NCBI GenBank assembly: GCA_011109175.1
Contig: RDEW01000078.1
Span: 9,239 to 73,238 of the forward strand
Direction of reading: 5' to 3'
DNA: 64,000 bases
From: Dicyema japonicum
Taxonomy: Eukaryota > Animalia > Dicyemida
A program made the translations under genes and the position numbers. Position 1 is the first letter of the stretch. Every line of letters begins with the position of its first letter. The notes under the pieces are model-generated. The model was not told the DNA's origin, ran no database searches, and saw nothing but the letters and a program-made list of their open reading frames with translations. This document shows positions 82-45,179 of this stretch, in pieces.

Positions 82-240
82 TTTATTAAAGTCACAAGTC
101 CGAAGAATATGTTCAAATTTAACTATTACGGATTATTCATATCACCAGAAACTATTCTCGATACGAAATCATGAATTAACTGACGGAATCGTAAACACAG
201 TTAACTTCACCTCAAAAGAAATAACCGACATTAAATATTC
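82..240 (+). pseudogene. Fragment of a third protocadherin-like paralog (end of EC5 and start of EC6), frameshifted
   Basis: Reads FIKVTSPKNMFKFNYYGLFISPETILDTK(fs)...DGIVNTVNFTSKEITDIKYS. It aligns base for base with about 38514-38673 of the second paralog (ttattaaagtca...ccagaaactat.ctcgatacgaaa...tgacggaatcgtaaacacagtta...aagaaataaccgacat.aaatattc). The flanks are not cadherin. Confidence 0.85.
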
Positions 241-19000: not shown

Positions 19001-21252
19001 TAATACAGTCATCCCGTGGAAATAAATACTCCATTTAAGAATGTTAGTAAATTAAATCTAAGAATCTCAGAGGTTTCAGCTCCAACGGACTTGAACATTA
19101 GGTGATTTATTGTATAGAAGTTTCTTTAGTAAAAAAGGATTCCGAACCACATGTAGAACATAGTTCTACAATTGTGGGGTTAGAAAGAATTGAATTCAAT
19201 CATCAACGATCGTTTGCAACTTCTCTTAAGTCTCCAAATGTTCTCCGCATTTATTCAGATGTGTGACTCGTGGGCGTCTACTGATCTCATTTGTTGATCA
19301 ATTTTAAATAACATATGTCATTTTATTAATTTTCGTGTTTTGGAATTTTTTAATTTTAACAATATCTTGGTTTTTTATTGCGTGGTCATATGAGTGGAAG
19401 ATATGTTCGCAGTGGAAGATAAGTTTGAAAAGTTTAATTCAGTGATAGATCGGGTTTTGGAAGTGGAAATCATGTGTGAAAATGCTTAAAAGCCGTTTGC
19501 GCTTTCAAATTTTAATGTAAAGCTTACAAAAATTATCAGTCAGTAATCAAAAACCACAGTTCTAATTAAGAGAACCTTAACTCAAACATTAATTAAAGTC
19601 AAAAAGAAGACAGAAAAAACCAGCAAATTAATTGATGAGTTTGCAGTAAGGCTGGCAGAGTCAACTTAGACACCACATCCAACTTTTACCTATGAAATAA
19701 CTTTTTAATTGGCCAATAGTCCTTATACCACTCTCAAATTTAGATAGTATTTTTAGAGCTCGATTACAATTTATATGATAATTAAATGAAATATTTTCTT
19801 GTTCTTTTAAATTCATCGAATTTCAGTACCTCTTCGTATTCAAATGAAAATGTAAGAGTGATTTTAACATCAAAGTAGTTTTCTTAATCCGTTGTTAATA
19901 GGATCTTTGAATGATCACTTTTGATCGATACACACTCTATTAGATGTTCAAAGGCCTTGGTTTCACCCCGGATTTCTTGATGATTTTGAAAATCTAAAAG
20001 ACAAAACATTTTCACAAAATTATCTTTCAGCACGGCACCATTTTTTAATGTTCCCAGCATGATTCAAAAATCTTCACTTTTCTGTTAAGAATAAGGCAGA
20101 GTAATCATCCTTATATTAAAGTATAGTGACATATAGGACTTCCTCTTAGTGGTCAATGAGTTTGATTTTCCAGATTCTTTGTAATCTGCTGAATTGGGTC
20201 AACAGATAATTAAAATTAATATCAGAGCTCTTAAAAATATGTTGAAATAACTAAATTAAATAGATAATCTATATTAAAGATCTCTATTGCCCAAGATAAT
20301 AAGGACACAGCGTGGAAGTAAAGATTCTTGGATGATATATGCTTATAACTAAAATCTGAGTTAAATTCCACAAAATAATTAACTAAAATGAGGGATATTT
20401 TGTACTAAGTCATTGGGGATAAACAATTAGAACTTCATATTCTAAAATTTGAATTTATTAAATAATTTTTATAAAAAATATTCAATGATTGACTATTTGA
20501 AGATTTGTAAGAAGTACATTAGAGTTTAGTTAGTTACTATTAACATATGGTAGTCAAACAACTAGTCCTACTCCTGTGCACTTCCACAAACTTCTCAGAG
20601 TGAGCAGAGGACGTAAACAAGTGGGAATCTTTAATGAAGAGATATATTTATGCGAGTAGTTCATGAGTCAGAGTATGTTTGCAGTTAGAAATATGCTGGG
20701 AGACTGTGAAAGAAACTGCGCAATTTTATTCCAAGAGTGGCTTACACTGCTTGAATAACATTTAATAAAATGCTGAATTACAATAAAGTCAAATATTAAA
20801 AAAAATTGAGAATCAGGCAATTTATCATTTGTTAGAATAATATAAGGAAATATTTTATGTAAAATTATCAATTTAATTAAATTCTTTCCGATATTGCATT
20901 ACACAACCAGTTGCGATAAGTGTTTGAAATTAATTCAAAAAATTACATTATTTCAATTTAACGTGACATTTGCTTTTCTTTAATATGACTAAATACAAAA
21001 AACTACTGCATGTTTAAAGACCAGCAAAAATGTGACTATACAATGCCTTCACACTAACCATAGTGCTCTATAACTCGGGAACGTGAAGACTAACTAAAAA
21101 CTACTCAAGAAATTTATTTCGAATTTATATACTACAATAAACTTAAAATAGTCTTTTTAAGTATCTTATATATGAAAAAGGTTATCTTTCAAAAACACGC
21201 TACTTTCACTATATAAGCAATCCACATATAAGATGAAACAAAAAGATAACAA

Positions 21253-23584
21253 ATGGTTTCCTGTTAGCAATTATTTAGAATATACTTATTTGTGTAATAT
21301 GGATGACCAAAATATATTCACATGCAGTGAATTACACGATTGAAGAGGAATTACCTATTGGACATGTAATTGGTAATTTCTGTAGGGATTTAATGATTAA
21401 TTGTTCTGACTATGATGTCTCTCTACAGTGTTATTATTTCTCACTAGACAAGTCTGGTGATATAAGAGTAAGGGTGAATGACATATTTAGATTAAAGAAA
21501 GGATTGATTATGATTCTGTATTCATGAAATTGCAAAACTATGAATTCAGGTATAAAATATATCTTTCAGGCGAATCGGGAAATTTAATTGTGGATTTAGT
21601 AGTGAAAGTATTATTTTAATTTAGAAATAATTAGGTCGTCGATATAAATGATAATAAACCGATATTTGATAGTCGAGTAATATATTTTAATGTCACTGAA
21701 TTAAAAATTGGGACAAATTTAACATTCCCGAAAGCCAAAGATGCAGACAGAAATGATATAATTAGATATGCATTGCTTGGAAACCAGGATTTTGAATTAA
21801 TTGAGGATTTCACAAACTTAACTTTAAAATGTCTTAAAAATTTCAATGCCAGTACTATGACGTCACTCAGAATTATTGCCGTCGACAATTATACATTGGA
21901 ACATTTAGAATATATTGATATTAAAATTAACCATCACACTCCTAAATACAACATAACTGCTTCTGAAGATGATATATTATTATCATGGAAGGCGGAATCC
22001 AACGTTTTTGTTGTTAATAAGACCACTTCATTGCTGGGTACTTTAACTGCTACAACTAATGATACAATTTCATGTATTGCAAACTCACGTGCAATTAGTT
22101 TGAGTTTATCAGTAAAGAATGAATATAATGTGTATGTGAATGACTATAATAGTGTGATTCCTGTCACAACTATTAATATTACATGTATTAAATTAACTGA
22201 TGATGGCTGTCCTTATTCATGGGATAGAGGACAAGATGTTTACATAACAAACTTGACAGTATTTTATTAATATTATTGTTAGATTATTTCTGAAAATATT
22301 TCTAATACTGCCATGTATTTGAAGATATATGAAAATATGCCAATTGAAACTGCAGTTGATATTGGAATTAGCGAAAATTGGGATATTAAAGGCTCAACTA
22401 ATTTTGTTGTATCAAGGTTTTCATTGTACCCAGTATCAAACCGAGTTTTTGACTATGAAAAAGAAAAAAATATAAATATTACTGTAAAATTTAAAAATGA
22501 TACATATTTAACTAAAACAATTAATATACTTGATGCGAATGATAATTCTCCATTATTTATAAATTCAACCTGTGGATATTATATAATGATAAACTCTCCA
22601 TCAAATCAATCACTATTCAATATAAAAGCACAGGACAATGACTCAGCCGAAAACTCCCAAGTAAAATATAGAATACATGCAATCAATGATTTGAGTATTA
22701 TTGACTGTCCTTCAAAGAATAACACTGACAATTTATTCAAAATAGATTCAAATACAGGAATAGTTTATACAAATAAGAGAATAACCAAAGAAACAATATA
22801 TAATGTTATCATTGAGGCTTATGACTCGGGACCACAACAACTATTCACTCAAACAAATTGCTTTATTAAAGTCATTAACCTCACCAATATGTTTAAATAC
22901 AACTATTTTGGATATTTTTTAAAACCACGAAGTACACTTAATAGCACTAAATTGAATACTGGAAATGTTATCATGAATACTGCTATTTTTGTCTCTGAAG
23001 AAATTACCGACATGAAATATTTAATTTCCAATGAATCCTTAGGATACTTTATAATTGATCCCCAAACTGGATCTCTCACAATAATCAAAGTACCAATGGA
23101 TTATTCACTTAATATTGAGTTTTCATCACAAAAATACTCGACTTTTAAATATAATTTTGTCATCCAATTTGAATGGAAAAAATCAAAAATAACTCCGAAA
23201 CTGAACGAAACAGACAAGAAATCAATGGTTATTATATGGACAATGTCCTTCATTTTAATTTTTGTAGTCACAATATCCTTCGGAATCACTGTAATGATTA
23301 AAAAACGAAAATTAAAGAATACTAATGAATTTGAATGGAAAAAATCAAAAATAACTCCGAAACTGAACGAAACAGACAAGAAATCAATGGTTATTATATG
23401 GACAATGTCCTTCATTTTAATTTTTGTAGTCACAATATCCTTCGGAATCACTGTAATGATTAGAAAACGAAAATTAAAGAAAACTAATGGGAAAACATTT
23501 TATCGTAAAATGAATGGTAAAAATCCTGTTGATCCTTCTGTAAGCTTTGAGGGTGTTTGGGAGAATGACAATCAATTTAATTAG
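21253..23584 (+). CDS. Protocadherin-like adhesion protein, 744 aa, five exons: 21253-21255, 21279-21467, 21491-21607, 21635-22258, 22283-23584
   Basis: Four phase-0 GT-AG introns (23, 23, 27, 24 nt) join the ORF pieces into one open frame. It has a signal peptide MNILICVIWMTKIYSHA, a protocadherin-type EC1 (YTIEEELPIGHVIGNFCRDL, RIDYD, DINDNKPIF), DAD, FDYE, DANDNSPLF, QDND and AYDSGPQQL motifs, about six EC repeats, a duplicated TM segment and a short tail. Confidence 0.9.
23166..23489 (+). repeat. In-frame 162-bp tandem duplication (54 aa) covering the juxtamembrane and TM segment
   Basis: FEWKKSKITPKLNETDKKSMVIIWTMSFILIFVVTISFGITVMI(K/R)KRKLK(N/K)TN(E/G) occurs twice. There is no N at the junction and differences are confined to the 3' end. 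Confidence 0.95.
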
Positions 23585-25989
23585 TGATTTCTTATTTTTT
23601 CGTTAATCTATTGGCTTTCTTTAATTCAGTGAGTCAGAGTAAATAGCTTTCCTGACATCTCAAGTCACTTTTTAAATAAAAAATTCCAAACTGAGTAACG
23701 ACAAACTAACAAATAGCGACACGTTGTAGCAGGAATGAATGGGAGATAGTATTCAGATAGAGTAAAGTGACATGATGCACCTAAACATATTAATACTTAA
23801 ATAAAGTTAACCATTTTTGAAATTTATTTCAAATTTATTAGAAAGAGTGAAAAATGGCAAGAACAATTTATGACATTTTAATAAAAAAATGTTATTCGAC
23901 ATTTACTAAGAAGTTACATGAATAGTCAGAGATCACTAGTCGTCATTATCCGTGAGACTGACAAGTCAGTTACTCTTTTTTTCTAATACGGTATGCTAAT
24001 ATGGAAGAAATTCTATTGAAGCTAAGTTTTTTTTCAAAACTAACTATCGAGAATCCAAAAACAATGATTATCTTCTTAAAATTCATCACTTCTGATTGGT
24101 GATCGTACCAGATGACATTGAATTGTATTAATTCAATCATGACTAATTAAAAAGTGATTCAGTAATTACAGATTTCCATAAATTATTGCAAATTTAAAAT
24201 ATTTCCTATACTTTCTTAATCCAATAATACAGTCCCTTTGATTTTTTGCAGTTACATTTTACTGTTAAAGACATTTCTTACTTTTTGGAATTCTAAGGAC
24301 ACAACAGCAAAAATTATAATTCCTTAATATCGCTCTCAGCACTCATGGAGTGCCATACCTGTAGTACAATGGGAATTAATTTACTTTATTAAATAAACGC
24401 AGCAATAATCAATAATATAAAACCCATCTAATTTGTCAAGCAATTTCCCTTGTCGACAACGCTGACTCGGGGCAGCTCATCAGAGAAATTTCGTTCAGTT
24501 TGTAGTTCGTAGATGACTAAAGTGATGGCAAAAAATGAACATTGCCATCCTTGTTTGTTTGACCGAAACATCGACTGATATTAATAATATTCTAAAAAAT
24601 CAGGTTAAAAGCATCGTTTATACAGTATGAGCTAGAGATAATCTTCAGCTTAGAAAATACAGTAACTGTGACTCTAACAACGTCTTTTAGAGTTCATAAT
24701 TTGACACTGATCATCATAGTCAGTTAAAAGTAGGTTTCTTTCTCAAATATTAAAGTTAATATATGAAAGTATTAATATTTTATCAAAAAGTTTATTTGAG
24801 TATAATATTTCAGTCCTGAAATGTTAATCACAACCTTTTTCTTTAGAGTCTCTACGGTAAACCTAGAAGACTATGAAGCTTAAATTTTTTGAGATTTATC
24901 GTAAAGACATAGACAGAATTTCACTTTGATCACAATAATATTTGAAGACTAAAACTCTTTACGAATTTCATTTAGCAGCAAATGATCTTGGACATAGGAT
25001 TTATGTAGTGATTAAACCTTTGTGAGGCTTGAGAGAATTCCAGATTAATTTATCATTCACAATGAAATTATATAATTCGAGAGGTCCGTTTATCTCTCTA
25101 TGTCAAACTCAAAAAGCTCCAGGGGCCGACTGAGATAATTTGAGTATACAAGCGGGCCACACTAAGTAATCTGAAAACACCGAAATGTTATTGAAGTGTA
25201 TTTAATAATTAGCAAGTCTACTTCATCGGTTATATTACGATAACACTTCACAATGCCAAATATAACAATTGTAATCATTTTTTGAAGATTATCATTTTCC
25301 ATTTTCAGTCTTTGTTTTGTCCTTGGGTGCCTCATTTTCATGACAGTTTTTCGTATATCTGAAATGTTTAGCAGTTCCGAACTGATCATGGATGACAAGT
25401 GAGCCTCAGTAAGCCTTGTTCTCTAAAACGATTTTGTTGATTTTACAAAGAAAAACAACTGTTACACATAGGTGGAACCGAAAACTGCCATAATAATCGT
25501 TGAAAACTATAAAGTTTGTAAACTTTTCCGGAAGTATGAATATAAGCCAGATATTCCTACTTCGAGGTATTTTTCTCTGAATGTAAAATCAGACTGCATT
25601 CCTAATAGTTCCATCGTAAGCACCAAGTGCTCCGCCAAACACGTTGAAGCACCCACCTTGTAAGACAGTACATCGTTGTTCTGGGAACGTTCGTATTAAA
25701 GGGGAACGTAAAGTGTAGGCCTGTGAACGTCTTCTAACCACGTAGAACCCCATAACCGCGGCCTGTCAATTTAAAGCCATTGACAGAAATGCACTGTTTT
25801 TCTTTTGTATCTCATTTCAATGATACGGTCAGCCCAATATCGTCGACTTTATAACAATCCTTTGTGCTGGCTGGTGTTTGACATAGCTGATCTATACATG
25901 TTCATATGTAAGACTTATTACTACTTCGGGTACCAAAAACCAGGATTCTTAATTTAAATACATGGTTTTAGCCGTTTGCTATTATGTGA

Positions 25990-26130
25990 CTACTTGATTT
26001 GAGATTTCTCTTCTTTTTGGTGGAGTCATGGATCCACCTTATTTAAATAGATGTTTCATTCCTTGCCGGCATTCAAAAGGATCCATATCTTCATTCCACC
26101 AGAAGACTATTTAGCTCCCTGGCAAAGTTC
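25990..26130 (+). mobile_element. SINE family B partial
   Basis: ggagtcatggatccacc...ggcattcaaaaggatccatatcttcattccacc core. Confidence 0.5.
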
Positions 26131-27419
26131 TGACATCGACCTCAGCTTTTAACAATGTTCTCTTATCTTTGTGCTTGGATGAGTGTTCTACTAAAATCAT
26201 CAGATCTCGAGATTAGTTAGTTCGGTTTTACCCTTGATCTTTGGAATAATTTAATGGTGTATGGATGACTTTTATAATAGTAATTTATGCAATTAGAGAA
26301 ATGATCATTTTGTTAGTAAAGAAAAATTGTGTAGATACTCTCATTTTGGTCGATTTTACTATAATTGCAATAAACTTTTTCGGATACTGAATTTATTTAA
26401 GAGAGAAATTTGTGGTGGTTGGATTTATGTCTGCAAAGTATCTGTGGATGCTCATTTGGATACTGTTTCAAGTGTTCAGGATTGATAGAATAAAAGGATA
26501 AGCTACCCGAGATGTTGTATGATGATTAGTGTGAAATTGACGGAGAGAGATGACTAATGAGCTTTTAGGTCACATATGACAAATCCATTACTCATATTAG
26601 CGATTATGTTCCACTGTCGGTGTACTTAAAGGAAAAGTATACTATCCGAGTATTGGATGAATAAAAATGAATTACTGTGATTTCCACGCATTCAAAGAGA
26701 TTCAGGAGATTGTATTTGGATGACAAATCACTTTAGAGTAATGAGTTGACCACCAGCGGTATTGATTGGTTCAATGGCAACTTTGTGGATGATTTTAAAC
26801 ATACAATATGATAATCTTTGACAAATTCGAATATGACACACAAGATGAGACCAGCGGCAATTAAATGGGACGCTCCAAATGATGGTCGGTTACATAAATC
26901 GGTATTTTAATATCACTGAAAATACCCGAAAATTAATTTATAAAAATATAAATGTTTATTTTATTTTAATTATAGATTATAAATAATCCGAATTCGTATT
27001 ATTGTGAGCGCAAGTGTTTATGAACGTTCGTGGTTGGACGGCTAGGTGACTGTGGAATTGTCGGCCTACTAATTTAGTGGTTAACATATTTGTTGACAAT
27101 GTTAGGTACCAACTGCAACCCTGTAAGAAGGTGATTCTACCGAAGAAGAGGACACAAGAAAGCGTAGAGTTTTAGCGAAAAATTATACAGGGCAAGGCAA
27201 CTGGACCATTGAAGTGGTAGCGGTTAGATTATCTAAAATATCTTAGTAGAACGAGAAGCTGGCTGATGACAATATCGATAGCTTGAGATTTTTTATGACC
27301 TTGCAAGGATTCCAGAGATTGTGATGAAAATGGGTATTTCATTATATTGACAGAATCCTAAATATGGAATATATATGGGACCGAGTACATATATGAACTA
27401 TGCCACCCCCGCAACGTTA

Positions 27420-27660
27420 GTGTGGTGCTGGTGGCTACTTGAATTGAAGATTTTTTGTTTGTTTCTTCTGTTCTTCCTCTTTCCTTTGGTTCCAGGGAGC
27501 TTGAATTGTTGGCATACTTTATGTGGCTCACCATTTCTGGTGGTGCAAGATATAATCCTAAATTATAACCAAAAAGGACCATTAGTCAAGCACCAAGTCC
27601 AAGCATGCCAAGACTATTGATGGAGGCCGGAATCAGCTGAATATTTTACATTCTGGCTAT
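27420..27660 (+). mobile_element. SINE family B-related copy
   Basis: gtgtggtgctggtggctacttgaattgaagattttttgtt matches the start of the 40160 copy, followed by the aaaaaggacc core. Confidence 0.5.
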
Positions 27661-27999
27661 GACGGTTTTCTGGTTCAATAAATTTAATTTATATTATTTT
27701 TGTCTCGTCTTACGACAGATTTACCAGTTATTCAGTGGCTTTGTTCTTTCTTTGGAAGCGAATGGTCACGTGGATATATTATTAAGCCAAGAAATCACCA
27801 GAAAGTTAGTTTTCAACGAGGGTTATGGCTGAGACAAAAGATTGGAATGGTCATACTCCGAGCGAACTCGTTCGCAATTCACGCAGCCGGTTTCCTCAAC
27901 TGACATTTGTTTCTTTGTTAAAAAATTATTTTATTTAAAAAAATACAACACACTATGTACATTGTGCCGATGATTTCCCACTTTAGATGGACGTGGTGC

Positions 28000-28300
28000 T
28001 CGACCTTCTTAAAAGGTTTTTGAAAAGGGTAGTCTGTGTAATAACTAGGGCAGTTTTTCTTAAGATGCCAGGATTGGCGAAGACTTTCCTACTGATATCC
28101 GCCATTTCTAGCCTCAACCAAAGTTCTTCGAGGGGCTCACATCACTTTGAAGCAAGCCTTCATCCGATATTGGATCCTCCACATATTTCTTTACTTCCGC
28201 TGGACCCTCAACAAAATCCAAATATTTCATCCCTTTATATGCTTTGCAAATATTTTCTGCTGCGACTATGAGCAACTGATCTAATAGTTCAAAACTATTG
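28000..28300 (-). mobile_element. Possible mariner-like transposase N-terminal remnant
   Basis: AAENICKAYKG...EDPISDE resembles the mariner HTH region. Heavily decayed. Confidence 0.3.
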
Positions 28301-28619
28301 TTAATTCCCTCACATTCAAAAGAACTAATTATATACGACTTCGGAAATTTCGATTCTTTGTTGTAGCACTTTTAAATTTATTTTAAAGGAGCTGGCTCAC
28401 TGATCGCATTTCCTTACAGATCATCAGGCGAAATGAGTTCTCGATTCTGAAAAAAACCAGCAGCTGTTAACTGTTAGTTTTTAATTTATTTTTGTCTTTT
28501 TAAAAAAATTAATTGATGAATAGTAAAGACTACATTTAAGATTTGTTATATATTGATTTAGTGTCCTTTGACATTACAGTAAATCACCACGTTTATGTTA
28601 ATTAATTGATTTTTTATAA

Positions 28620-30850
28620 TTTGCGCCAGATACTTGATCTCAAACCTGACACAAACACAAAGACTCCTGATCAGGATCCCCAAAGCTGCCCGTATATCCT
28701 TCGCGGACTGCCTATGTGAGTGTATTGAAAGGGCAGTCTTTCGGACGACTATGAGGATTTATTATTTTGCTTCGCTCCATTCACACTATGCATACCCCAT
28801 AGGAGGGGGAAAGAAGAGAAATCACTTACGTCATTAGTAAAGGAGAATGTCCACATACTCTCAAGGAACCTATTGGCAGACTCCAAAAAGCTCACCTACA
28901 AATCCCAAAACCATGAGAAGCCAACACCGACTATCTCGGACACTCAGAGATTAAGAAGTGCGATCCGTCGAAAACTTTCGGAAGTGGAATCCGTGCTGCC
29001 TTGAGGATCCTTGCAGATCAACACCGTATAATTCAGCCGTCTGAACAGTCCTACGCTGAGCGACACCAAGTACCTCCCAACGACCACCGGATTCCTCCTT
29101 GCCTAGGACAATTAACTAATTTACTTGTCTCTGAAGAGGACGTAAAAGATGGGATTCTCTTTTGTCTCGAGCAGCAGTGGAGGACTAGATGGCTCTGTCC
29201 GGGCACCTCAAAACCTCATTGCTCATAACACGGGCAACTCTGGGTCCGGCAATCACCAAACCAATGAACAGGATGCTATCAGGGACACTACCAGAAACAA
29301 TTCGACACGTAATGTTCTCCACCAAGTTAATCGCATTCAACAAGAGGTGAGGGGGAATATGCCTATTACTGCGGCTTGGTTTTTGTTGGTTGGCCTCAAA
29401 GCTTGTATGCAGAGCAATCCTGCCTACGCTGATAACACAGCTACAAAACCAAATAGGGGTCACTCGGGGGTTGTGAAGCGGCAGTTCACGCTGTCCGAAA
29501 ATTCCTCACGTAATCGTCAAAATTGACATAAAAATGCTGTCAATTCGATACGACGTGATACAATTCTGGATGATTGCTTCACATCAACCCATTAGTGTAC
29601 AGCTATATTCATAGCTCGCACGGAAAAGTATCCAATCTGGTACACGACCAATATTACATTCCATATTTTTCTGGAGTCCAACAAGGTGACCCACTGTGTT
29701 CTGCCTTGTTCAGCCTGGGAATTGCCCGTATCACAGGATATTGAAAATAATTAGATGGTCACTTACTGATACTGGAATCAGTAACACTCTAAGAACAAAA
29801 GAACAACAACTAAAAACAACATTCAGACTTCGGAGATGCTGGACACATATACCTCCTTATTCCTGCTGAGAACGTTTTTTCAGCACAGAAACTAAACTAC
29901 GTTTTTCGGGGCACTCTGCTATATGAAAATGCAACAGCTCGATGCTATCGATTCCCTCTTCCGGACCACTATTGAACGTATCACCAATGTGAAATTTGAC
30001 GACCGAGGGTGGGACCAAGCAACCCTACCCGTTAGCTTGGTGGACTGGGAATCCCTTCACTGAAAGATCTGGCTTGTCCCGAGTATCTGTTCTCTTTGGT
30101 CTCTAGCCACTGCTGATCAGGATGATTCTCCAACTCTAAACAGAATCATTTGACATCACAGATATGGAGCATTTGAAATGGATGATGCCTGAGCAGAAAG
30201 ACCGTTGCAGGACCATCTGCTAGGATAAATATGAGACCCTTCTGAATTAATCAAACCAACACAGATGCGAATCGAGTAGCATTTGGATCAATGCACTTTC
30301 CGTTGGTAGTGACGGGACCCACCTTGACGACGATACTGTCCGCATCGGCATTTCCACCAGACTTGAACTGGAGATTTCCGGACTCACAAATGCCGGTGTG
30401 GCGCCACCGTCGATTGTTATGAACACCATGCCCTCTCATGTCAAAGAAATCCAGAACGATTCCCAAGACACAAGGCGATCAACGGAATTGTCAAGCGGGA
30501 TACCCTGCTATACTTGAACTGCTGGCCTGGACAGAGGGGACAGATAACGTCCTGACGGAATCACAATTTTCCCATTTAAAAAAGGAAACCTTTGATCTTG
30601 GGTGCTACTTTTGTCGACCTACTTTGCCCATCCAACATTTTCGGAAGCGCGGTAGACACACTGTATGCCGCAAAAGAACCGACGATGGAAGCAAAGGAGA
30701 AGAAATACGGAGCGCTACGTGTCCGATTCGCGTTCTATCCTACTGTGGTCGAGGGAACCAGACGTCTCAAAAGCGAGTGGAACAAAAAAACTATTGACAA
30801 GCCGGCGTACTTGGCTCTTTTCAACCTCTTGGCCAATTAAGCGGAAGAGA
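28620..30850 (+). mobile_element. CRE-clade non-LTR retrotransposon (RT, CCHC, restriction-like endonuclease), degenerate
   Basis: RLLIRIPKAAR N-terminus, SSGGLDG, GVQQGDPLCSALF, WDQATLPV..GGLGI, zinc knuckle HKCRCGATVD..EHHALSC..RFPRH..IN, RPDGIT.FPF.KG...WDATFVD, KEKKY. Confidence 0.85.
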
Positions 30851-31029
30851 AAACCATTTTTTAATGTATGAATAAACATGGCTGTTCTATTTGGTGGTAT
30901 TTACATATGGTCCGATTTTTCCAAACAATTAAATATCCTTTTTCAGGGTTTTATCTAACATGATATATCTCTGGTTGCTTACCTGAGAAAAAGGAATATT
31001 TTAGTTATATTAGTTTTTTTAATTCGGCT

Positions 31030-31330
31030 TAGTTAGTTAAAGCACATTCGCGTTACCAGTAAACACTGTTTATGGTTTCGCTTGTAGCATGCTTTTCGAT
31101 TATCATTTCCGTTAGTCTTCTCCATCCTTTTCGCTGTCGTGCTCGTTTCCTGATTTCATCCAGATCGTCTGCATCCATCAGTCGGCCCCCGATCACTGGG
31201 TAATCCTCCTCAAGTGTCCTTGGAAGACAACTTCTTTGACGTCCTCTGAATGCAGGAGATACAGTATGGTCAAAAAATTCTTCCATGGCGACATTGCATG
31301 GTGTCTGTTCATCCATCCGTGTTAGATTCC
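31030..31330 (-). mobile_element. RTE-like LINE 3' fragment
   Basis: ORF 31053-31316 (FRGRQRSCLP..L..D...GRL.DADDLD.IR..A..RKGWRRL) is homologous to the C-terminus at about 45200-45400 (FRGKPRITLPEVLHKDL...DDLDTL..A.NR.AWRKL). Confidence 0.75.
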
Positions 31331-31449
31331 ACTTGAAATTTAAATTTGAAAAAACGTGTTCTTGTGGTACCGTGTGGTACTAATGAATCTTCAAATATTC
31401 AGCTTTATAATTGTTTTCAAGAGTTTATAATTATGAATTAATATCTAAA

Positions 31450-34030
31450 AATCATTGTTAAATAATCTCCGCCCTTTAAATAATTTAACCTCGGAATTTT
31501 CGGAGTTTATGTGGTTCATCGATTCTGTAATTTTTGGTAACGCCCAGAGGGCATTTAATGATCCTCCAAAGAAAACCATTAAACATCTACCTCCGAGAAA
31601 ACTGTCTTCTCGGCTCACTCTCTATCATCCTCATTTACCCGGAAGGAACCCCTAGCCCACCGCAAGAAACGGACCACGGTTCTGCAACTGAAAATCAATG
31701 GAGTAAGAGGCAAGATATTGGAACTCCGCTCTCTCCTGGCGGACCTGAAGATCGACATGGGTTTAATTCAAGAGACGAAACTGCCTGCGAACAGTCCTAC
31801 CCCGATGTTCCCTGGATACGAGTAAATACGGACTGACCGAAAAAGGAAGCGGGGTGGTGGCCTCCTCATTTTATATCGGAAAGACCTTAAATGTGTGAAC
31901 ATTATTTCAGTGGTGAAGAACATCTTGCGAGACGACGATGTTACTTAAGTCAATGCAGTCTCACTAGAAACAACAAATGGAAAAATTATTTTTGTAAACG
32001 TCTATGCTCCCCTACCTGGTTCTTGTCCGAAGCACTACAATATTCCCATTTATCTACTTTGGCTTTTTTGAAAGAGTGATCATTGCCGGGGATATCAACG
32101 CAAAACACCCTATGTGGCTGGCAAGTCAACCGTCCGACTCAAGAGGAAAAGTACTATTTTCGCAGACAGAACCTTTCACAATCATGAATGATCAGTCAAA
32201 ACATACGGGAACCTCCTTCAGACCAACTAACTTCTCCAGACATCACGCTTTGTTCTTCCGCTCTGGCGGCAATATCGACTCGGTCAGTCACCTTACAACT
32301 CAAGAAGCGACCATAATTCTATCCTCTTGGAGATCAAAAGAGAAACGTCAACTTGGAGGAGATCCCCAGAACAATTCAACTACAAACGCGCAGATTATAG
32401 ACTTTACCGTACATTTACTGACAATCTACTGCATCACCTGAATGGTATTTTTTTCATGGACAAAGTAGTCGTTTAAGAAAACCGCACTATCTTGAATGCG
32501 AGATAACTATCTGTACCTAAACAACGTTTTAACTACACCAAGGGATTCTGGCCGATTAATACTGAGGATAAATTTAGACTCAAGGCTTTGAACAATGAAC
32601 TAAAACAGGGAAATAAGAGCACAAATATCAAAATGAAAGCATGTGTTCTCCTCGTTGAATAGAAATAGACTTAAATTTGGAAGACCATCCGAGACGCCTC
32701 GAGAGGGGATGAAAGATCGTCCGAGTGGACCACAGCCAAAAGGACTTGACCAACCTTATAAATTACTATGTGAAAATATCCATAAAGACCATAAGAAGTC
32801 GGATGTACCCCCGAAATATCTCAGTAAACCGATAAAGGAACTGGATACGATTCACTTCACTGAAAACGACATTAGATATACATCGAAAGTCACTACAACG
32901 ACCTATCATAACGGACCAGATAAGATTCCAATGATCCTCCTAAAGAATTTGGGAGACTATGGAATTGCTGCATTAACTAAGATATTCAACCAATCTATTA
33001 ACAAAATTGTACTCCAGCCTTATGGAAGTTTGCCCACTACGTCCAATTTTGAAATCCGGTAAAGTGAAATAGGACCCAGCTTCATACAGACCGGTCGCGT
33101 TATTGTGTTCGGTGTCTAAAATTCTGGAAAGGCTGGTTCTTGTGAAAATCAAAAAATTTCCTCCCGGATTTGTCATTTCAACATGGTTTTAAATAGAGAC
33201 TTCGACCCACTTATCTGCATTGACTAACTTTATACGATATGATTTTTCGCACATGCCGGGACACATGAAGACTGTACTTTGCTCCATAGACGTCCACAAA
33301 GCTTTCGAATCTGTGTCAAGGATTCTTACTCGGAAAATTTACTAAACAAAGATCCCTGGAAAGCTCAAACTCTGGCTAACTAACTCCCTTAGTGGTTGGA
33401 GAGAACGCGTCTGCATTGGCCAGTCAAGGTCTATTTTCACGGCTTCTTCCAATGGGGTTCCCCAAGGATCCTTTGTCTCCAGTTTTATTCAACCTATACA
33501 TGGCGGACCTCCCACTCCAGACTCCGAAAATAATATTATTCTAACTTTTGCCGACGACATCGTCATTGCGTCACGCGATCAGATTGCCACTTCGAAATTG
33601 CAAAAAATCCGGACCGTCTTGACAAATGGCTATCGAAGTATCGCCTAACTATTAGCAGTGAATAGTCAGTCACAACCATATTTACTTAGACAAGAGACTG
33701 GAAGACGGACAGTCGAACTGAAGGCAAACAATGAATGTGGTATATGGAATCCACTCATCTCTTAGACGAATGTCTTGAAGATCGAGGCTAGCGGAGAAGA
33801 GCCTCCAAAATCACGGAACGCTGGATTCCTGGAGAACTCCAGCCACCAATGCCTCTTGAAGCCTTGGTAAGAATGAACCACGGAATGCGCCGTCGTGACT
33901 GCGAAGGTCCAGTCACTCGACCAATACGTGCTTGTGTGGAGACGAAGGAAAAGCTAGAGCGTGCAGGGATCACATAATTAGTTATTTGTGTAACCGTGGT
34001 CTCTGGTGTTATTATTTATTATTTATCTCT
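31450..34030 (+). mobile_element. Jockey/I-like LINE ORF2 (APE and RT), degenerate, with 3' tail
   Basis: RKGGGLLILYRKDL, IIAGDINAKHPMW, GPDKIPMILLKNL, DPASYRPVALLCSVSKILERLV, QHGF, LDVHKAFESV, GVPQGS, FADDIVI. Ends in a (TTA)-rich tail near 34010. Confidence 0.9.
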
Positions 34031-35999
34031 CTGAAAATTCAGTTTTTTATCTGGTCTGCCATATTACATATTTAGAACTAAATCCTGAAAATTTACATAT
34101 AGTGCAATAGAAATTTTAGTCATTTTAAATTTTACAAAAAGTGTGTAGAATTTAATTGAAAAAAGCTTTTCTAGTGGACCACGCTAGATTTATAAATTTA
34201 ATAAAAATAGCTTTTTGTAAGCAGATCTATTAAAATAAATACATAAAAATAATAGTATTTAATTCTACGTCGATTTTATAAAAAATCTTTAATATCCATT
34301 TAAATTAGGAAAAAAGATCCTCAGCTAGTTCTCTGGGTTTTTACACACAAACTTCTTTAACTTTTTAATAGAACTTCTCCCCTTCATTGACTCGAACAGT
34401 AACTTAGCCTTTATCTTCCATCTGCATTGTGGGTGTATAAGCTGGACAAATTGACCCCTCTGTGTGACGGATCTCACTAATAAAGCAATTGATCCCACAA
34501 AAAATTATCAAATGTGTTTCTTTAGTAAAGTTAAAAAATTTCGCATATTAGATTTAGCCAAGATTGTTTTAATATAAAAATGAATTCTGAACCATTTCAA
34601 ACGTTCATATATCTCCCGCTTGTTGGGTCCAATCTCCCAAAGATTCAAAAATATTTTTCTTTTAAGTATATACTTCTCCGAAAAAATTACTCGATACGTC
34701 CTAAGGAAACCTCAAAACAATTTCGATTATTTGACATGGATCATTGATTATGTAAGCAAGTTACTAAAGATTTTGGAGGTCCTGGACTGACTAAAGATTA
34801 CTTAAAATCTTTATAAAGCTAATTAAGTTTATTTAAATTATTTAAAACACTGTATAGCTTATTAAACACCTCAGAATGCATGGATTTGTCAGTTACTCCA
34901 TAAAAAATCACATTTTTCAACCAAACATCTTCTAGAAGTAACGATTGTAACCAGACTGTACCCTTAGTATTACTTACAATTATAATGAATTTTAGTTATA
35001 TTATATCTCACTTTTGAAAAAGTTTTTTGACCACGTGCTTTTAGCTTTTTGTGGGACAATTTTATTTTGACTTAAAGTGCTTAGGAGACTTGAAATAAGT
35101 ATTTTATTATTGCATTTTAGAAGGAGAGTGTTTAAATAAGCAGTTTAATAAATCAAGTTTTGATTTTTTACCCACGTGGGCTATCTCCCATCTCCACTAT
35201 AGATGACTTCTCTGTACTCTTGGTCATTCAATTAATGTTCAGTCATTTAGCCGGTCAACCATATGTGCAAGCTGTCACTTTCCACAAGTTTTTTTTTCAT
35301 GCAAGGAAATAACTCTTTGAAAAGTTAATGAATTCGACAAGTAATTGGTTGGTCGACATTCTCACAATCGTGATCTAGATCAGTTTGAGTAGCCACTTGA
35401 TTCTGTAAACGTCATGCTTTGTCTTTGACTGAGTCAAAAAACTGTAAGAGAATGTCAGATAAGATAAACATAGATTTGTGCAAAAAATCATAGCTACACT
35501 GACAAAATCAAAATATGACTCTTAGATTATATACTTGAGGATCAGGCTATTAAAAAGGTGAATAACATTTTTAGAGATATAAGACAAAGCATGTTAGTGA
35601 GATAAGAAACACTAAAACTCCTCGAGAAGTTTACTTATCATGCGACTGTAATGGAGACATTTGAGGGATAAGTAGGATGAATTTTTGATGTAAGCCAACA
35701 CTCATAAGTCATGACGGTCGCGAAACCCACTTGCTTATTAGTATCTCAACATCACGTCAGTTAACTAGGATTAAGATTTAAAAACATGGCAATCGAAAGA
35801 GCTATCTTATCAATAAATTTTACCTGAAAGCTATTTCCAGTCACTCTCTTTTCTACGATGTCTTACTTTTCTGTCACTCGCATGTCTCGTATTTAGCAAA
35901 TTTTAATTTTACAATAATATGACTCACAGATTAATGATAGTCTTTCGCGTCAATATCCACTGTCTTTTGGCAGTTGGAGCTTGATTTATTTAATAATCC

Positions 36000-36297
36000 C
36001 AAATATATCAGATAAAGGCCTAAGGTCTAATTAAGGTATATCCAGTTTACAAGTCCTTTCCAAGCATCACCTCCATGTCTGGCATTGTGAAAACCCACCC
36101 AGTAGAGCAGCCAAGATATCCTTTTTGGATATCGGCTAGGCACAAGTCTCTCCTGAGACTGGGAGATCACATGACGACTCCTAGGAATAGAAGAATGCAC
36201 AGATCAGTAAGAAATCATTCAACCATACAGGTAGCAGTGTAGGAATTGAATCCAGGCTAACCACTACGCGATAACACTAACCACTACGCTACCTGGA
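36000..36297 (-). mobile_element. tRNA-derived SINE, family B
   Basis: Head GGTAGCGTAGTGGTTAG...GGATTCAATTCC, body gaatgatttcttactg...gtcgtcatgtgatc...caaaaggatatc...aactggatataccttaattaga. Confidence 0.8.
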
Positions 36298-36910
36298 GAA
36301 CGTGATTTGTTAATAATGTCTTGTTTATTAATAATAAGAAATTTAATATTTCAAATTACATACATAATTCTAATTATTATTCTAACTATTTGCTTCTTAC
36401 AACACCGACGGAGATCAACGGAGGAGCCACTGGGCTTTGAATGCAAACAGTTTCATGAAAAAAGACAGTGATTTCCCGCTTATGCCTCCAGTTGTCTCAA
36501 TAACAACAACGCGTTATTTAGTCCAGGAGATTATAAAGATTAAGAATAAGATTAATATGCAATACAAAATTATTTTTTTGGATGACATAAATCATGATTG
36601 ACCCCTCAAAGACACCAGTAACCATTAAGGTTATAATTTGTGTAAATTTGGTTGAATTGAGGGTCTGAATCTTAATATTGGAGTTAATCAGATCATCCCC
36701 TATAATGTTATCATCTTCATTTACATATCGTCATTCCAGTAAAATAGTTATTTTAATATAAATTGAATTATTAAAAACTTGGAACAAATGTCCTGATTGT
36801 GAATATAACGTTAGAACTATTGATTATAGGAATAACCAAGATAATGTTGCGGTTTTATCGTTGTATTTAATATTGTTTGCGACTTTATGGGATATAATTA
36901 CATAGAAGGA

Positions 36911-39086
36911 ATGGTTTGTTATTATCTGTAATAACGTAGAATGCATTAATGCTGATGATATGGATGCCCCTAATATATTCATACCAAATTCATTACACCA
37001 TCAAGGAGGAGTTACCCATTGGATATACTATTGGCAATTTCTGCAATGATCTGGCCATTAATTGCTCTGGTAGCAAGATTATATTAGACGCTGTATATTT
37101 TTTAGTAGACACTCAGGAAACATCAAGGTAACTGTCCAATTGTATTGCTTAAGATAAAATCGAGAATTGACTATGATTCTAAGCTTCCAAAATTTAAAGA
37201 TGATGAATTTCGATATGAAATAGATCTCTTTAAAGGATCTGAGACTATAATAGTAAACTTAATAGTGAAGGTATAATGGTCTTAATATAAAATAGGTCTT
37301 AACTATAAAATAGGTCTTGGATATAAATGATAATAGACCGAGGTTTAATAGTCGAGTAATATATTGGAATGTTAGTGACTTGAATATTGGACAACTTTAT
37401 CAATCCCTAAAGCCACAGATGCTGACAAATATGATACTATTCATTATATATTATTTGGAAACAATAATTTTATATTAATTGAAGATAATACAAACTTAAC
37501 TTTAAAATCACTTATAAATTTCAAACCCAACACTAAGATATCACTCAGAATTATTGCCATTGACAATTATACATTGGAACATCTCAATTACGTTGATATT
37601 AAAATTAACTACCCAATCCCCAAATACAACAATGTGACTGCAAAGGGAGATGTAGTATTCTCATGGAAGGGCAAATCCAATACTTTTGTTGTTAATAAGA
37701 CCACTTCATTACTGGGGACTTTAATTGCTACGACCAATGATACAATTTCATGTATTGCAAACTCACGTGCAATTAGTTTGAGTTTATCAGTAAAGAATGA
37801 ATATAATGTGTATGTGAATGACTATAATAGTGTGATTCCTGTCACAACTATTAATATTACATGTATTAAATTAACTGATGATGGCTGTCCTTATTCATGG
37901 GATAGAGGACAAGATGTTTACACAACAAACTTGACAGTATATTATTAATATTATTGTTAGATTATTTCTGAAAACATTTATAATACTGCCATGTATTTGA
38001 AGATATATGAAAATATGCCAATAAAAACATCCGTTGATATTGGAATTAATGAAATTGGGATATTGATACAATAATTTTATTTCAGGTTTTCATTGTATCA
38101 TATCAAAGAGTTTTTGACTATGAAAAAAAAAATCTATAAATATAATGTAGTATTTCAAAAAATACGCATTTACAAACAATTAATATACTTGATGCAAATA
38201 TACACCAATATTTACAAATCAACTATGGATATTATTTAATGATAAATTCTCCACCAGAACAACAATTATTCATATAAAGCAAAGATATTGATTCTGAAAT
38301 AAACTCCCAAGTCAAATATAGAATACATGCAATCAATGATTTGAGTATTATTGACTGTCCTTCAAAGAATAACACTGACAATTTATTCAAAATAGATTCA
38401 AACACAGGAATAGTTTATACAAATAAGAGAATAACCAAAGAAACAATATATAATGTTATCATTGAGGCTTATGACTCGGGACCACAACAACTATTCACTC
38501 AAACAAATTGTTTTATTAAAGTCATAAGTCTGAAGAAAATGTTTAAATATAACTATTTCGGATCGTTCGTAACTCCAGAAACTATCCTCGATACGAAAAT
38601 TATGAAGAATTCTGACGGAATCGTAAACACAGTTAGCTTCATCTCCAAAGAAATAACCGACATGAAATATTCCATTTCTACTGAATCTCAGAAATACTTT
38701 AAAATTGATCCCAACACCGGCTCTCTCTCGATTATTAAACTACCACTAAATTATGAACTTGAGATTCAGTTTTCGTCACAAAAATACCCAACATTTAAAT
38801 ATAACTTTATCATACGTTTTCAACCAACGAACTTATCCATCCAAAAACAACAAAACAAATAATTCCTCCCCAACACTGAAACTAATCCCTATGTTACAAA
38901 ATGGGGATATATTTGATTGTATTTTTCAGTGTGTCAATTGCTTTCGTAATGGTTGTTGTTATGAGAAATTATTGCAAAAAGTCAGATAAAATAAAAAATC
39001 AAACAATATATGAAAATAATTCAGCCTATGTTTCTTACGTAAACTACGAAAATATGGCTGTGGATTCGTCAAACGCTAATTTATAG
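36911..39086 (+). pseudogene. Second protocadherin-like paralog, frameshifted (pseudogene or consensus errors)
   Basis: Same four intron positions as 21253-23584: 36914-36939, 37128-37153, 37271-37313, 37937-37960. Exon 3 is 117 nt in both. Single-base deletions occur near 37113 and 37390, many deletions at about 38040-38290, and shifts before the TM (GIYLIVFFSVSIAFVMVVVM). Confidence 0.85.
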
Positions 39087-41200: not shown

Positions 41201-42224
41201 TGTCAGGGGAAAAGCCGTCGCATTTTATCAGCTAAATTATTTTAATTGTCTTGTTTCGTAATAAATTGTTTTCTCCCTTAAACTATTAAAAGATATACAG
41301 AATGAGTATTTAGTTGAATAGTTAAAACAAAATTAGTTTAAATCCAGTTTTTTTCAGTTATTGAACTGGCCCTATATAAATTATAAAACTTTAAAAACAA
41401 TGCGAATTAGTAGATGGTACCTACAATCTTAGAAACTTTCGAGAGTTAAGAATTCTACTTACGGAAGTCACTTAGCTTTTTTTCGCTTATCAAATTAAGC
41501 CTGAGTTGGTTGAAAGGGACCAGAAAATTTTTTAATGAAAAATTAAATCATTCTTAGACCGATTGAACTTAGTTTATTAAAATAAAATTAACGAGTTCAA
41601 ATTATCAAGTGCTCAAAAAATGACACTAAAGTTAGTGCGAACCTCTTTATTTCTTTTTAATTCTTGTTGACGGACATATAAAATGAAAGAAGCCTTTTTC
41701 ATGTATTCTATTACATTACGATAATTTTTGAGACATGGTAATGTTTTAGTTAAGATCTGAGATAATACTTTCTCCATTATTAAATTCAATTCAGTCATTC
41801 GTGAAATACTATCAAGCAGAAATACAACTTTTAGTCATCAATATCAGATACCAACAGATCAGATGTTCATTTATAATATCGACTTTACATGCAACCGGAA
41901 AGAAGCAAATAGTTTACGACTAATTAAGTGTATACAGTTCCCAATGTTATAGTCACAAATACACAACTCCCTTAGGAGCCACATTTGTGTGAACCCCTCC
42001 AGAGATGACCAAGTTAAATGGGAAGAGAAGAGTGATCTCTTTCGATGCCTGAAGTCCTAAAACTGAGTGCTTCTCGACACTGGTGGAATTATGAGGCGAC
42101 GCTAATGAAGTGAAGAAACTGAAAATATGACAAGAATTTACGATCACATAGTGAATTAGAGAATTTCAACACACAGACCATAGTCATATGAATAGAAAAC
42201 TCACAAGCTCTTATTCTTCCATCT

Positions 42225-42720
42225 CCAGAAGGACTCTGGAGTAGGTTGCAAAAGGCAAACGTGTCGGTGCAGGTGATGTCCCAGACAAGGGTGTAGGCTA
42301 GATGACACTAGCAAATCTTCGAAAGAATTCCAGCAATAGCATTGTCCAGGGCTCACTGAGAACGAGGAATGCAGGGAAAGCTAATAACCACGGCTCTAGA
42401 CTTCACGAGCATGGCCGCCGTCTTTGTCAACAGAGAATTCAGGTAGAAGTGTAGAATCCTCTTAACAGGATGTTACAGGACATTGGCGACGATAGCTATG
42501 CAGGGAGAGAAAAGTCTACTGGGTTGCGAATTTCAAGCCCTCCGAGTCTTACTGGCAGCGTGGTTTGCTTCCATGAGTAATCCTTGAACCAGACGTTGAA
42601 GATATGCTCCGCTGTCGTACGAATGATCCCGTTATCTGTGCGACTTGGTCACACAGGGTGAAATAGAGAGTAGTCTTCAAGACATATGCAAGCCTCTGTA
42701 CTTTTATAAACACCACTTGA
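42225..42720 (-). mobile_element. CRE-like RT C-terminal fragment
   Basis: SWKQTTLPVRLGGLEIRN..D.SLPA and LVWDITCTDTFA. Confidence 0.7.
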
Positions 42721-44211
42721 GCCACTTAAATTTGGAATGCTTTGTAGGAGTTAACATGCAGGCGGTAACAATCAAAAAACGATGGAAAGCGTTTCGAACG
42801 GTCACATTTGCATGTCGGAGTACAAGTCGAAATGAAAGTGGAATTTGATGTTAACTAACGATTAACTATTGTTGTTAGTTTACAAATAAAATTTGATTGT
42901 GTGAAAGAATTACATTATTGATTGTATTTCATAATAAAATTTTAAATTAATTTACTTAAAATTACTTTGATGTGGTTGATAAATTCTCAATGATTTATGA
43001 CAATAATTAACTATAGGTTCTTATCAATCGATGTGTCAATACGAACGTACATTCAGTAGTTGTTCTAACGGAAGAGAATTGAGAGAATCCTCGTTGGGCA
43101 CAGACATGACATCGAAACTTGGGAAATTTACTCTCTGCAACTAACTGAAATATTAATCTGAGAGAAATCAAAGAAGACTTTTATATAAAAAAGAGATCAC
43201 AACAATGCAAATCGGGAGATTAAAAGACCCTAGTATACTTTATCAGCGGATGGAGAGGAAGGATATTCCGAAGATCGATGGAAACTTTCGAACAAACTGT
43301 GTCTTGACCCTATAACTCCAGTGAATTTTTCAATGTAATGTATTTAAAGGAAGAATCCACGAAATTCCGAGGAAGGCTAAGAATAACCTTTCTGGGTGTT
43401 CTCAACGCCAACCTAACAAAAATCATTGGTATCTCATCACAGAAGAAGGTAAACAACTAATTAAGTGTATCTTGACTAAATTCGTGGAAATACAAGTATT
43501 CCCAAACACAGTCAATTCAGATCACAGCTGCGGGAATCACTGAATTTTCCAGTGAAGTGGAGAGTAACCTTTTTGATGCTGTCCGATCACTGGAAATATA
43601 GATATAATCATATTAACTATCATAACATACATCATATTAACTATTATGTCAGATGATCCCCCTAGTTTTTAGAATTTCATTGGATCTTATTTTATCGGAC
43701 ACTTCAATCGTACATTGTACATGAATATCTGAAAAAATTCAGCGGTTTCAGATATCGTTAATTATTCAATCAATTATGCCAAACAACAATGAAAAATATT
43801 AAAAAGCATTATCAACCTTCATAGAAAATCAATTAACCATAAAATTTTACAGTAACTGACAAAACAAAAATCATAAAAAGCGATATGTGGTTATTATAAT
43901 AAAAAAATTCATTTCAATAAAAAATAAAATTATTCCAAAAACCAGGGTAAAATCAAAATAACAACTCATTGATCCTGAAGCGATCCAACAATCTCAGAAC
44001 TTGCCTCCAGGCAACGAAATTATTTCCGGTGGAAAGAATTGCTAGTACTTTTCAATGCTGGCCATGCATTAGACGTCTCATTCGTAAGGTGGATCCAATG
44101 ACGCCATCAGAGAAAAGGAAGATAATTTTTAAATTAATTATCCACATAGGACAACATGACGGCACGTGGCTTTATGTTTTCCAATGAAATGCGTATTAAA
44201 AATGATTCAAT

Positions 44212-45150
44212 AATTATTATTATTATTTAAGCCAAAGAAACACCGTCTTAACTAATAACTAATATTCAAGAGAATTCGGTTGTTTGTGCTTTTCGTGATA
44301 AGAATGTTTAGTGACCTGATTCGATTACTGACCTCTCGTGAACGATGTATCATTCTCTTAAGGTTGTTTCTTTCCATAATTATTTTTTTTTTGAATCGTA
44401 TTTCAATTTTTCGTTTTTTGTATATGCTTTTCTGATAAAAATATTTATCGCGTCAATGATTGTTTTGTTGAAATAGTATACAGCTTTGTTTATGGAGGAG
44501 AAATTTTCTGGGTGGAAATGTTGCAGTTTTGAATCAACGAAATTTGTAAAGCCAGTCCAATTTGCATTTATGTAAACATAGAAATGAATAGGTTTCGGTA
44601 CAAAGCGTGGCTCGCAGTTCAGCTTCATTATCAATAAATGGTGGTCGCTCCGAGGTCATAAGGGACCATCCAATTAATGATCGGGGAAAAACGAGGTGAG
44701 CAGACGGATAAGTCCGGAGATGTCACAATGTCCACATATTGTATGGTGTCCTAGTGTTCTTTTTCGGGTTGTTGATGATTATTAAGTTTCGCATTTAGGA
44801 TAATAGCAGGTTTTCTCTGTTATCAGCTTGACTCCAAGGACAGTGGGGGACCTTGTCATTGGGATCCGAGTGGGACCAATAAAGATACTCGGTTCATCCT
44901 TAGAACGACGGTCCGAAGTGAAAGTGAAACAGATTTACTTGGTTGCAGAAATTGTAAGTCGATTTCCAACAATCCAATCGTGGAGAGTGTTCAATTTTGC
45001 CTGAGTTTTAAAGGATGCGACTTGTGTCGAGCGGTTCCGTATTGCAATGACTACATCGTCTGCGTAGGATAATAGCAGGGAATTTTCGTCTCCATTATTA
45101 GGTAGGTCGTGTAGGAATAGGTGAATAGAACTGGTGAAAGTTATAATATT
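44212..45150 (-). mobile_element. Jockey/I-like LINE fragments (RT piece and endonuclease C-terminus/linker)
   Basis: LFLHDLPNNGDENSLLLSYADDVVIA (about 45140-44810), DL.SDHHLLIMK and ANWTGF...I..AINIFI (ORF 44380-44634). A (TAA)n tail lies at about 44212-44228. Confidence 0.75.
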
Positions 45151-45179
45151 ATTATTAATAGCACTTTCGAAAAACCAAA

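Follow-up and report, generated by a model that had tools for sequence, protein, structure and literature searches.

In a 64,000-nucleotide (nt) stretch of the genome of the dicyemid Dicyema japonicum (contig RDEW01000078.1, positions 9,239 to 73,238 of the forward strand; hereafter designated the window, which lies on scaffold C352), we found two copies of a cadherin-repeat gene, copy 1 (c1) and copy 2 (c2), that are divergent over most of their length but nearly identical in two short internal tracts (tract 1, T1, and tract 2, T2). The tracts recur in further copies of the family, on other scaffolds and in dead as well as intact copies. We consider that this pattern reflects, with a probability of roughly 0.66, recurrent non-allelic gene conversion confined to islands of identity in a dispersed, lineage-specific cadherin-repeat family, pseudogenes included. 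The features that carry the argument are listed below.

21253..23584, + strand: c1, an apparently intact cadherin-repeat gene (three-frame translation, splice landmarks, PF00028, and cadherin matches in the PDB)
36911..39086, + strand: c2, a pseudogene with intron positions as in c1 and lesions relative to it
22006..22344, + strand: T1 in c1, 97% identical to c2 (9 differences in 339 nt), including intron 4
37684..38022, + strand: T1 in c2, with a perfect core at 37736-37922 and intron 4 at 37937-37960
22651..22875, + strand: T2 in c1, covering most of the sole cadherin domain significant in Pfam
38301..38525, + strand: T2 in c2, with 3 synonymous differences from c1
38023..38300, + strand: decayed segment of c2 between the tracts, with 11 indel events, 9 of them frameshifting, and in-frame stops

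Results

Two near-identical tracts in a divergent gene family

Global alignment with a list of the mismatches showed that c1 22058-22244 and c2 37736-37922 are identical at 187 of 187 positions, that intron 4 (22259-22282 versus 37937-37960) has one difference in 24 nt, at 22263, and that the 225 nt of 22651-22875 and 38301-38525 contain three differences (22663, 22753, and 22861), all synonymous. These counts reproduce in full those of an earlier note on this DNA, made from its letters alone. As stated there, the segment between the tracts is divergent again (60-79% identity between c1 and c2). The first extracellular cadherin domain (EC1) and the last domain are at 50-75%. The 59% amino acid identity that had been counted by hand for EC1 comes close to the 53 of 98 residues (54%) found by BLASTP with the two exons taken separately, and the exon-intron layout described as identical indeed has its intron positions common to c1 and c2. 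Of the domains, which number about six, T1 occupies approximately the third and T2 approximately the fifth, and the boundaries of T2 coincide in all copies.

Further paralogs, which the earlier note had proposed to look for, were found by searching the genome at the DNA level (67,542,437 bases in 377 scaffolds): six copies bearing EC1, on C352 (c1 and c2), C101 (two), C361, and C367, together with a seventh copy in a gap and several fragments. Exactly six loci carry exon 2. The copies other than c1 and c2, and the fragment in the window, are as follows.

C101:742466: L002 (C101a), 89% identical to c1, a pseudogene with four frameshifts in exon 5
C361:87471: L003 (C361), open throughout apart from a 31-N gap
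C367:1430687: L005 (C367), 76% identity, one +1 frameshift
C101:537627: L006 (C101b), 84% identical to c2, a pseudogene with eight frameshifts and three stops
C348:96500-103500: L014, the seventh copy, with an in-frame last ectodomain domain and a putative transmembrane (TM) segment at local 3161-3301
82..240 of the window, + strand: stand-alone fragment of 160 nt from a last ectodomain domain of c2 type, 86% identical to c2 over 161 nt

Mean pairwise identity among the six copies, calculated in sliding windows, was 92-97% in both tracts versus 55-80% elsewhere. The tracts are near-identical in five copies irrespective of scaffold or coding state; the pseudogenes c2, L002, and L006 retain them at 97-100%, and c1 is as close to the copies on other scaffolds as it is to c2, with 0-3 substitutions in each tract. 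In the DNA search of the genome, neither tract was found outside the family.

The copies fall into three old lineages, A (c1, L002, and L003), B (c2 and L006), and C (L005), and the C348 copy probably belongs to lineage B. This copy is 96% identical to the tail and flank of L006, its remainder lying inside a 1672-N gap; it may be an intact twin of the pseudogene or an unmerged haplotig. A '712-aa open frame' at C348 was rejected as an artefact of the N run. In L003, the gap (local 1470-1500) is flanked by a 300-nt overlap of 97% identity (9 differences), and since this overlap probably represents two alleles left unmerged, the gene is likely intact. About three genes look intact; c2, L002, and L006 are pseudogenes, and about half of the copies are dead. 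Because the intron positions are shared by all copies, the family arose through DNA duplication and not through retroposition. Its members are dispersed over at least 5 scaffolds amid decayed pieces of long interspersed nuclear elements (LINEs) and other repeats, with fragments on C350, C312, C333, C124, and C201 in addition to that at 82-240 of the window. The last had been listed in the earlier note as a third fragment; the piece is real, although isolated, and the idea that the DNA ahead of the window (L013) holds a third complete copy was rejected, as no sequence of the gene lies there.

Copy 2 is a pseudogene

Counted in the earlier note as one of two paralogs of the proposed array, c2 has frameshifting indels, internal stops, and a broken tail. 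Exon 4 carries a 1-nt deletion at 37389, and the indels in 38023-38300 are 1-8 nt long, deletions for the most part. The ectodomain frame is ended by a TAA at 38860-38862, a TM-like open reading frame (ORF) lying in another frame, and no usable splice donor was found ahead of the stop at 38860. The indels are distributed unevenly: the 305 nt that separate the tracts have 11 events, the tracts themselves none, and the 289 nt after T2 likewise none. The multi-base deletions are unlike consensus errors of long reads. Protein-level selection cannot act on this and the other dead copies, in which the tracts are conserved.

Synonymous divergence, a control copy, and conflicting trees

Synonymous divergence (dS) between c1 and c2 is saturated in EC1 and amounts to 0.44 in EC2, 0.00 in T1, 0.40 in segment D, 0.09 in T2, and 1.2 in the last domain (segment E). 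Among the five copies with near-identical tracts, dS is 0.00-0.07 in T1 and 0.02-0.12 in T2, versus 0.46-0.56 and 0.26-0.33, respectively, to L005. Thus, L005 differs from c1 at 38 of 222 sites in T1, compared with 2 of 225 for c2 (Fisher p = 1e-9), and at 17 sites in T2, compared with 3 (Fisher p = 0.002), while the pooled variable segments contain 345 (c1-c2) versus 331 (c1-L005) substitutions, which were counted as equal. In T1, L005 has nonsynonymous divergence (dN) of 0.13-0.14, and both rates are like those of its other segments. Because L005 diverges normally in T1, this tract is not a cold spot for mutation, nor is it under unusual constraint, and L005 serves as a built-in control that separates conversion from constraint.

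The same comparison bears on the proposal that constraint at the nucleotide level preserves, within the tracts of every copy, some element of the DNA or RNA, for instance a regulatory site, a small RNA, or a splicing enhancer. Such an element would fit conservation that spans synonymous sites, intron 4, and pseudogenes, as well as the boundaries of T2 being the same in all copies. It is, however, at odds with the normal divergence of L005 in T1, and the fragments L009 and L011 are just 84-88% identical in T2, that is, diverged by 12-16%. Moreover, Rfam gave no match at E <= 1 over 20500-24500, RNA folding of the tracts was no better than that of shuffles (z = -0.72 and +0.22), and no overlapping or antisense ORF was found in the tracts on either strand, the longest alternative open frame being 41 codons. 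An element needed by dead copies is also hard to motivate, and we regard this proposal as highly improbable.

Trees of the individual segments are in conflict. The grouping of c2 with L006 received 96-100% bootstrap support in four segments, whereas L005 grouped with L006 at 100% in segment D. The trees of T1 and T2 are near-stars, in which the deep branch between lineages A and B drops from 0.2-0.4 to about 0.01. Trees by domain, dN/dS ratios, and sliding windows were among the checks that the earlier note had named, and the segment trees yield no single concordant history, their conflict reaching 100% bootstrap. A PHI-like neighbour-compatibility test gave p = 0.001, a permutation test of the longest concordant run of polymorphic sites gave p = 0.0005 for nine pairs (c1/c2 and eight others), and all four gametes are present among the variants shared within the tracts. 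Pair-specific blocks were also observed: c1 and L002 are 92-100% identical over 21343-22330, and c2 and L006 are 97-99% identical over 21253-21340 and 21658-22240, with 53-61% in between. An exchange specific to c1 and c2 was considered and rejected; T at 22126 is common to the two, but at 22245 c1 agrees with L006 instead, so that these neighbours have no privileged relation. Collectively, the collapse of dS in the tracts, the L005 control, and the conflicting segment trees support that part of the reading in the earlier note which invokes regional conversion in a cadherin-repeat family.

We infer the following course of events. The family would have spread by DNA-level duplication into repeat-rich DNA, and ectopic gene conversion would repeatedly copy short stretches between its members, dead ones too. 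As conversion requires near-perfect homology, it would be confined to the two islands of about 340 and 225 nt. The islands would stay homogenised and hence convertible, while flanks below the homology threshold would drift or decay, so that the confinement would presumably be self-reinforcing.

Gene model of c1 and the predicted protein

The exons and introns of c1, with a tandem duplication near its 3' end, are as follows.

21253-21255 (ATG only), 21279-21467, 21491-21607, 21635-22258, and 22283-23584, + strand: exons 1-5 of c1
Introns 1-4 of c1: 23, 23, 27, and 24 nt, all phase 0
23166..23489, + strand: tandem duplication in c1, 162-nt unit with 2 mismatches, doubling the juxtamembrane and TM segment

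All six EC1-bearing copies have five exons and four mini-introns at common positions, and in all of them an intron of 23-26 nt directly after the ATG splits the start codon from the signal peptide. The introns of the family, at 23-43 nt, are in keeping with those of dicyemids (PMC6543705), the mean intron of D. japonicum being 38 nt (PMC6736024). No part of the window resembles human or octopus DNA.

Protein searches were performed exon by exon. In exon 5 of c1, residues 104-197 matched PF00028 at 57.2 bits versus a cut-off of 28.8, and the PDB search returned 102 cadherin chains at E <= 0.01, the best being 8vy2, 7sz8, and 6vg4 (CELSR1 repeats first, protocadherins next); residues of about 70-200 of this exon align to CELSR1 and to many protocadherin structures. 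The start of exon 4 is a cadherin linker followed by a repeat. Putative Ca-binding linkers read from the translation are DINDNKP at the exon 3/4 junction and DANDNSP and QDNDSAEN in exon 5, and the remaining three inter-repeat linkers are degenerate. The protocadherin-type EC1 profile PF08266 matched exon 2, searched separately from exon 3, at 14.9 bits, below the cut-off of 23 (E = 0.024). For the third domain, which holds T1, no family was detected in the profile searches of single exons, AlphaFold gave no confident model for exon 4 and three paralogues (predicted local distance difference test score of about 30 for residues 100-208), and the ESM Atlas returned leads at the 0.82 level only. 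A large protein collection contained no dicyemid relative, and its matches were protocadherins at about 30% identity only.

A 25-residue hydrophobic stretch, a putative TM segment, follows the ectodomain in c1, L003, L005, and the C348 copy, and is doubled in c1. Each copy has its own stop 40-60 codons past this stretch, and the tails cannot be aligned between lineages. From these features, the family protein is predicted to cross the membrane once and to have about six Ig-like/cadherin domains, Ca-binding linkers of which two are canonical, and a tail that is short; for c1, spacing and motifs point to roughly six domains, followed by a TM segment and then by a tail some 40 residues long. The intact copies may function in adhesion. 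The 162-nt duplication in c1 may be real and recent, or it may be false, with two haplotypes placed side by side where contigs were joined; the second possibility is considered because similar duplicates of 95-97% identity flank the N gap of L003 as well as three single-N joins of the window.

Discussion

Weighing of the conversion reading

Several points weigh against recurrent conversion as the source of the mosaic. There is no rise of GC or of GC at third codon positions (GC3) in the tracts (GC3 0.19-0.27 versus 0.15-0.39 in the flanks), unlike in fugu protocadherins, and T2 is more conserved in L005 too (92%, dN/dS 0.13-0.2). Single-base frameshifts, such as the +1 in L005 and that at 37389 in c2, could be consensus errors of long reads. 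Furthermore, the result rests on assembled sequence from a hybrid, merged assembly of a genome with 1.24% heterozygosity and 49% repeats: contigs from Platanus and Falcon were merged and then processed with SSPACE, GapCloser, and HaploMerger to give 67.5 Mb in 377 scaffolds (PMC6736024). Trouble of this kind is seen in the family itself, in the gap of L003 with its 97% overlap, the C348 copy in a gap, and the duplications at single-N joins, and smoothing of the consensus or mis-phasing of the T1-T2 segment could sharpen or partly create the mosaic. As for GC and GC3, their rise is a common but not an obligatory feature, and its lack removes one classical corroboration without contradicting conversion. 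The conservation of T2 in L005 with low dN/dS indicates that part of it is protein constraint; this constraint, acting on the core of a canonical cadherin repeat, probably explains how T2 stayed similar enough to be convertible.

The concerns about the assembly can be taken further, to the point that similar paralogues had one consensus written into several loci by bubble-merging, gap closing, or polishing with multi-mapping reads, with wrong joins in addition. The hybrid pipeline and high heterozygosity, the overlapping 97% duplicate at the gap of L003, the family copy lost in the 1672-N gap on C348, the 162-nt duplication in c1, and the direct repeat of 145-165 nt at 95-97% identity found at every one of the three single-N joins of the window all lend themselves to this account. 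Yet there are no Ns within 8 kb of c1 or c2, and the loci are not one pasted contig, since each has private variants or indels in or beside the tracts, such as a 2-nt deletion of L002 at 22726 and four substitutions specific to L006. T1 has a graded 5' edge, 22006-22057 containing 5 differences, and not the sharp one of a paste, and as an artefact merges only sequences already about 95% alike or more, the contrast with the 55-80% flanks and with L005 would persist. An origin of the tracts in the assembly therefore appears unlikely; the private variants and indels, the graded edge, and the N-free surroundings of c1 and c2 all speak for a mosaic that is real for the most part.

A more elaborate possibility is that the tracts serve as anchors for recombination, with pseudogenes and fragments as the silent source of donor sequence, so that the T1-T2 block, and perhaps EC1, is swapped into a few expressed genes. 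As a tiny octopus parasite, D. japonicum attaches to the epithelium of its host, and, if true, such an archive of cassettes would let a 30-cell parasite vary a surface adhesin against that epithelium, as an animal analogue of pseudogene-templated surface variation. Genes and pseudogenes do share a layout of conserved flank, variable block, and conserved flank, and the history of segment D differs from that of its flanks at 100% bootstrap. However, no recent transfer from a pseudogene to an intact copy was seen, the D segments of intact copies having dS >= 0.3 to all pseudogene D segments, the D block of c2 is too decayed for a useful donor, and passive, homology-limited conversion yields the same pattern. 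We give cassette exchange only a slight chance.

The earlier note had gone on to propose a functional recognition-code array evolved independently of vertebrates, with N-terminal domains selected for specificity and membrane-proximal cores kept uniform by conversion. EC1 is the most divergent coding part (54% amino acid identity), conversion islands are present, the top matches in the large protein collection are protocadherins, although at about 30% identity, and exon 2 matches PF08266 weakly. Against this stand the deaths of c2 and two further copies, which leave about three intact genes, the dispersal of copies whose ectodomains are multi-exon and share no constant exons, and the score of 14.9 versus 23 bits for PF08266, the best solved relative being CELSR1. 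Nor do the tracts have the position required for 'variable tips, homogenised membrane-proximal cores': they lie in about the third and fifth domains, the membrane-proximal domain (22877-23165; dS 1.2) is among the most divergent parts, and its variability and that of domain 4 equal that of EC1. Pairwise dN/dS shows no sign of selected diversification, at 0.1-0.4 for EC1 and 0.3-0.7 for the remaining variable segments. Positive selection on EC1, EC2, D, and E was rejected, all pairwise ratios being below 1; the sole value above 1 came from a piece of 27 codons ahead of T1, where synonymous differences number about 1-2. The divergence of EC1 looks like age. A recognition code of this kind is consequently very improbable, and the present results are no demonstration of an independently evolved one of the protocadherin type. 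The earlier note had overlooked the lesions of c2, the presence of the same tracts on three other scaffolds, and the 162-nt duplication in c1.

Comparison with known systems

Regional gene conversion in the clustered protocadherins of vertebrates (fugu, zebrafish, and human) provides a precedent for the conversion favoured here (PMC1852091). Both systems comprise cadherin-repeat paralogues with divergent N-termini and with internal stretches of more than 99% identity, synonymous sites included, attributed to repeated conversion. Regional conversion in a cadherin family was reportedly described by Noonan et al. in 2004, as cited in PMC1852091. The vertebrate protocadherins have one homogenised block at the 3' side (EC4-EC6), neighbours in a tandem array, raised GC3, and single large variable exons spliced to constant exons, whereas in the dicyemid family two short islands lie midway along a gene of five exons, the copies, half of which are pseudogenes, occupy at least four scaffolds, the membrane-proximal domain is divergent, GC3 is not raised, and constant exons are absent. 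The clustered-protocadherin architecture, with one large variable exon, a tandem array, and constant exons, is not that of the present family. The parallel drawn in the earlier note is apt for the mechanism but leaves the recognition-code function unsupported.

Interlocus conversion between a gene and a pseudogene is exemplified by CYP21A2 and CYP21A1P, tandem duplicates a few tens of kb apart. There, as here, a dead paralogue is locally near-identical through patchy conversion and bears frameshifts elsewhere; unlike there, the exchange pool of the dicyemid family includes copies on other scaffolds. With CELSR/Flamingo and the delta-protocadherins, the family shares a DxNDN linker and a DxDxGxN-like motif, residues of about 70-200 of exon 5 aligning to their extracellular cadherin repeats, although at about 30% identity over one or two repeats; in contrast to them, it lacks a G-protein-coupled receptor part, an epidermal growth factor/laminin part, and a conserved cytoplasmic motif.

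Surroundings of the copies

One further coding remnant lies between c1 and c2, as context outside the family.

32004..32438, + strand: decayed piece of a LINE endonuclease (PF14529, E = 2.5e-6)

The region 28000-34000 between the two copies is relatively GC-rich (41-43%), and pieces of it recur beside family copies on C101, C350, C333, and C367. The segment 252-3124, which follows the cadherin fragment at 82-240, is collinear with 42137-47657 at 84-94% identity, the second copy carrying insertions of 0.8 and 2.1 kb and, on the minus strand, a reverse-transcriptase ORF (45737-46324, PF00078); sequences of this block also flank the cadherin fragments on C312. A tandem repeat of a 47-nt unit occupies 48107-48341, with about four to five copies at 61-88% identity. 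Direct repeats were found at 9861-10221, 11674-12020, and 12561-12928, each with a single N one base past its first copy (10022, 11839, and 12706); they resemble overlaps between haplotypes that were left uncollapsed where contigs were joined and that now appear, falsely, as tandem duplications.

Significance

For annotation, c2 should not be entered as a gene, trees of the family must leave out both tracts, and the family flags weak points of the public assembly. The genome of dicyemids is poorly explored and their life cycle largely clonal, and the family described here would represent a clean and quantifiable case of non-allelic conversion between dispersed paralogues, pseudogenes included, in such an animal.

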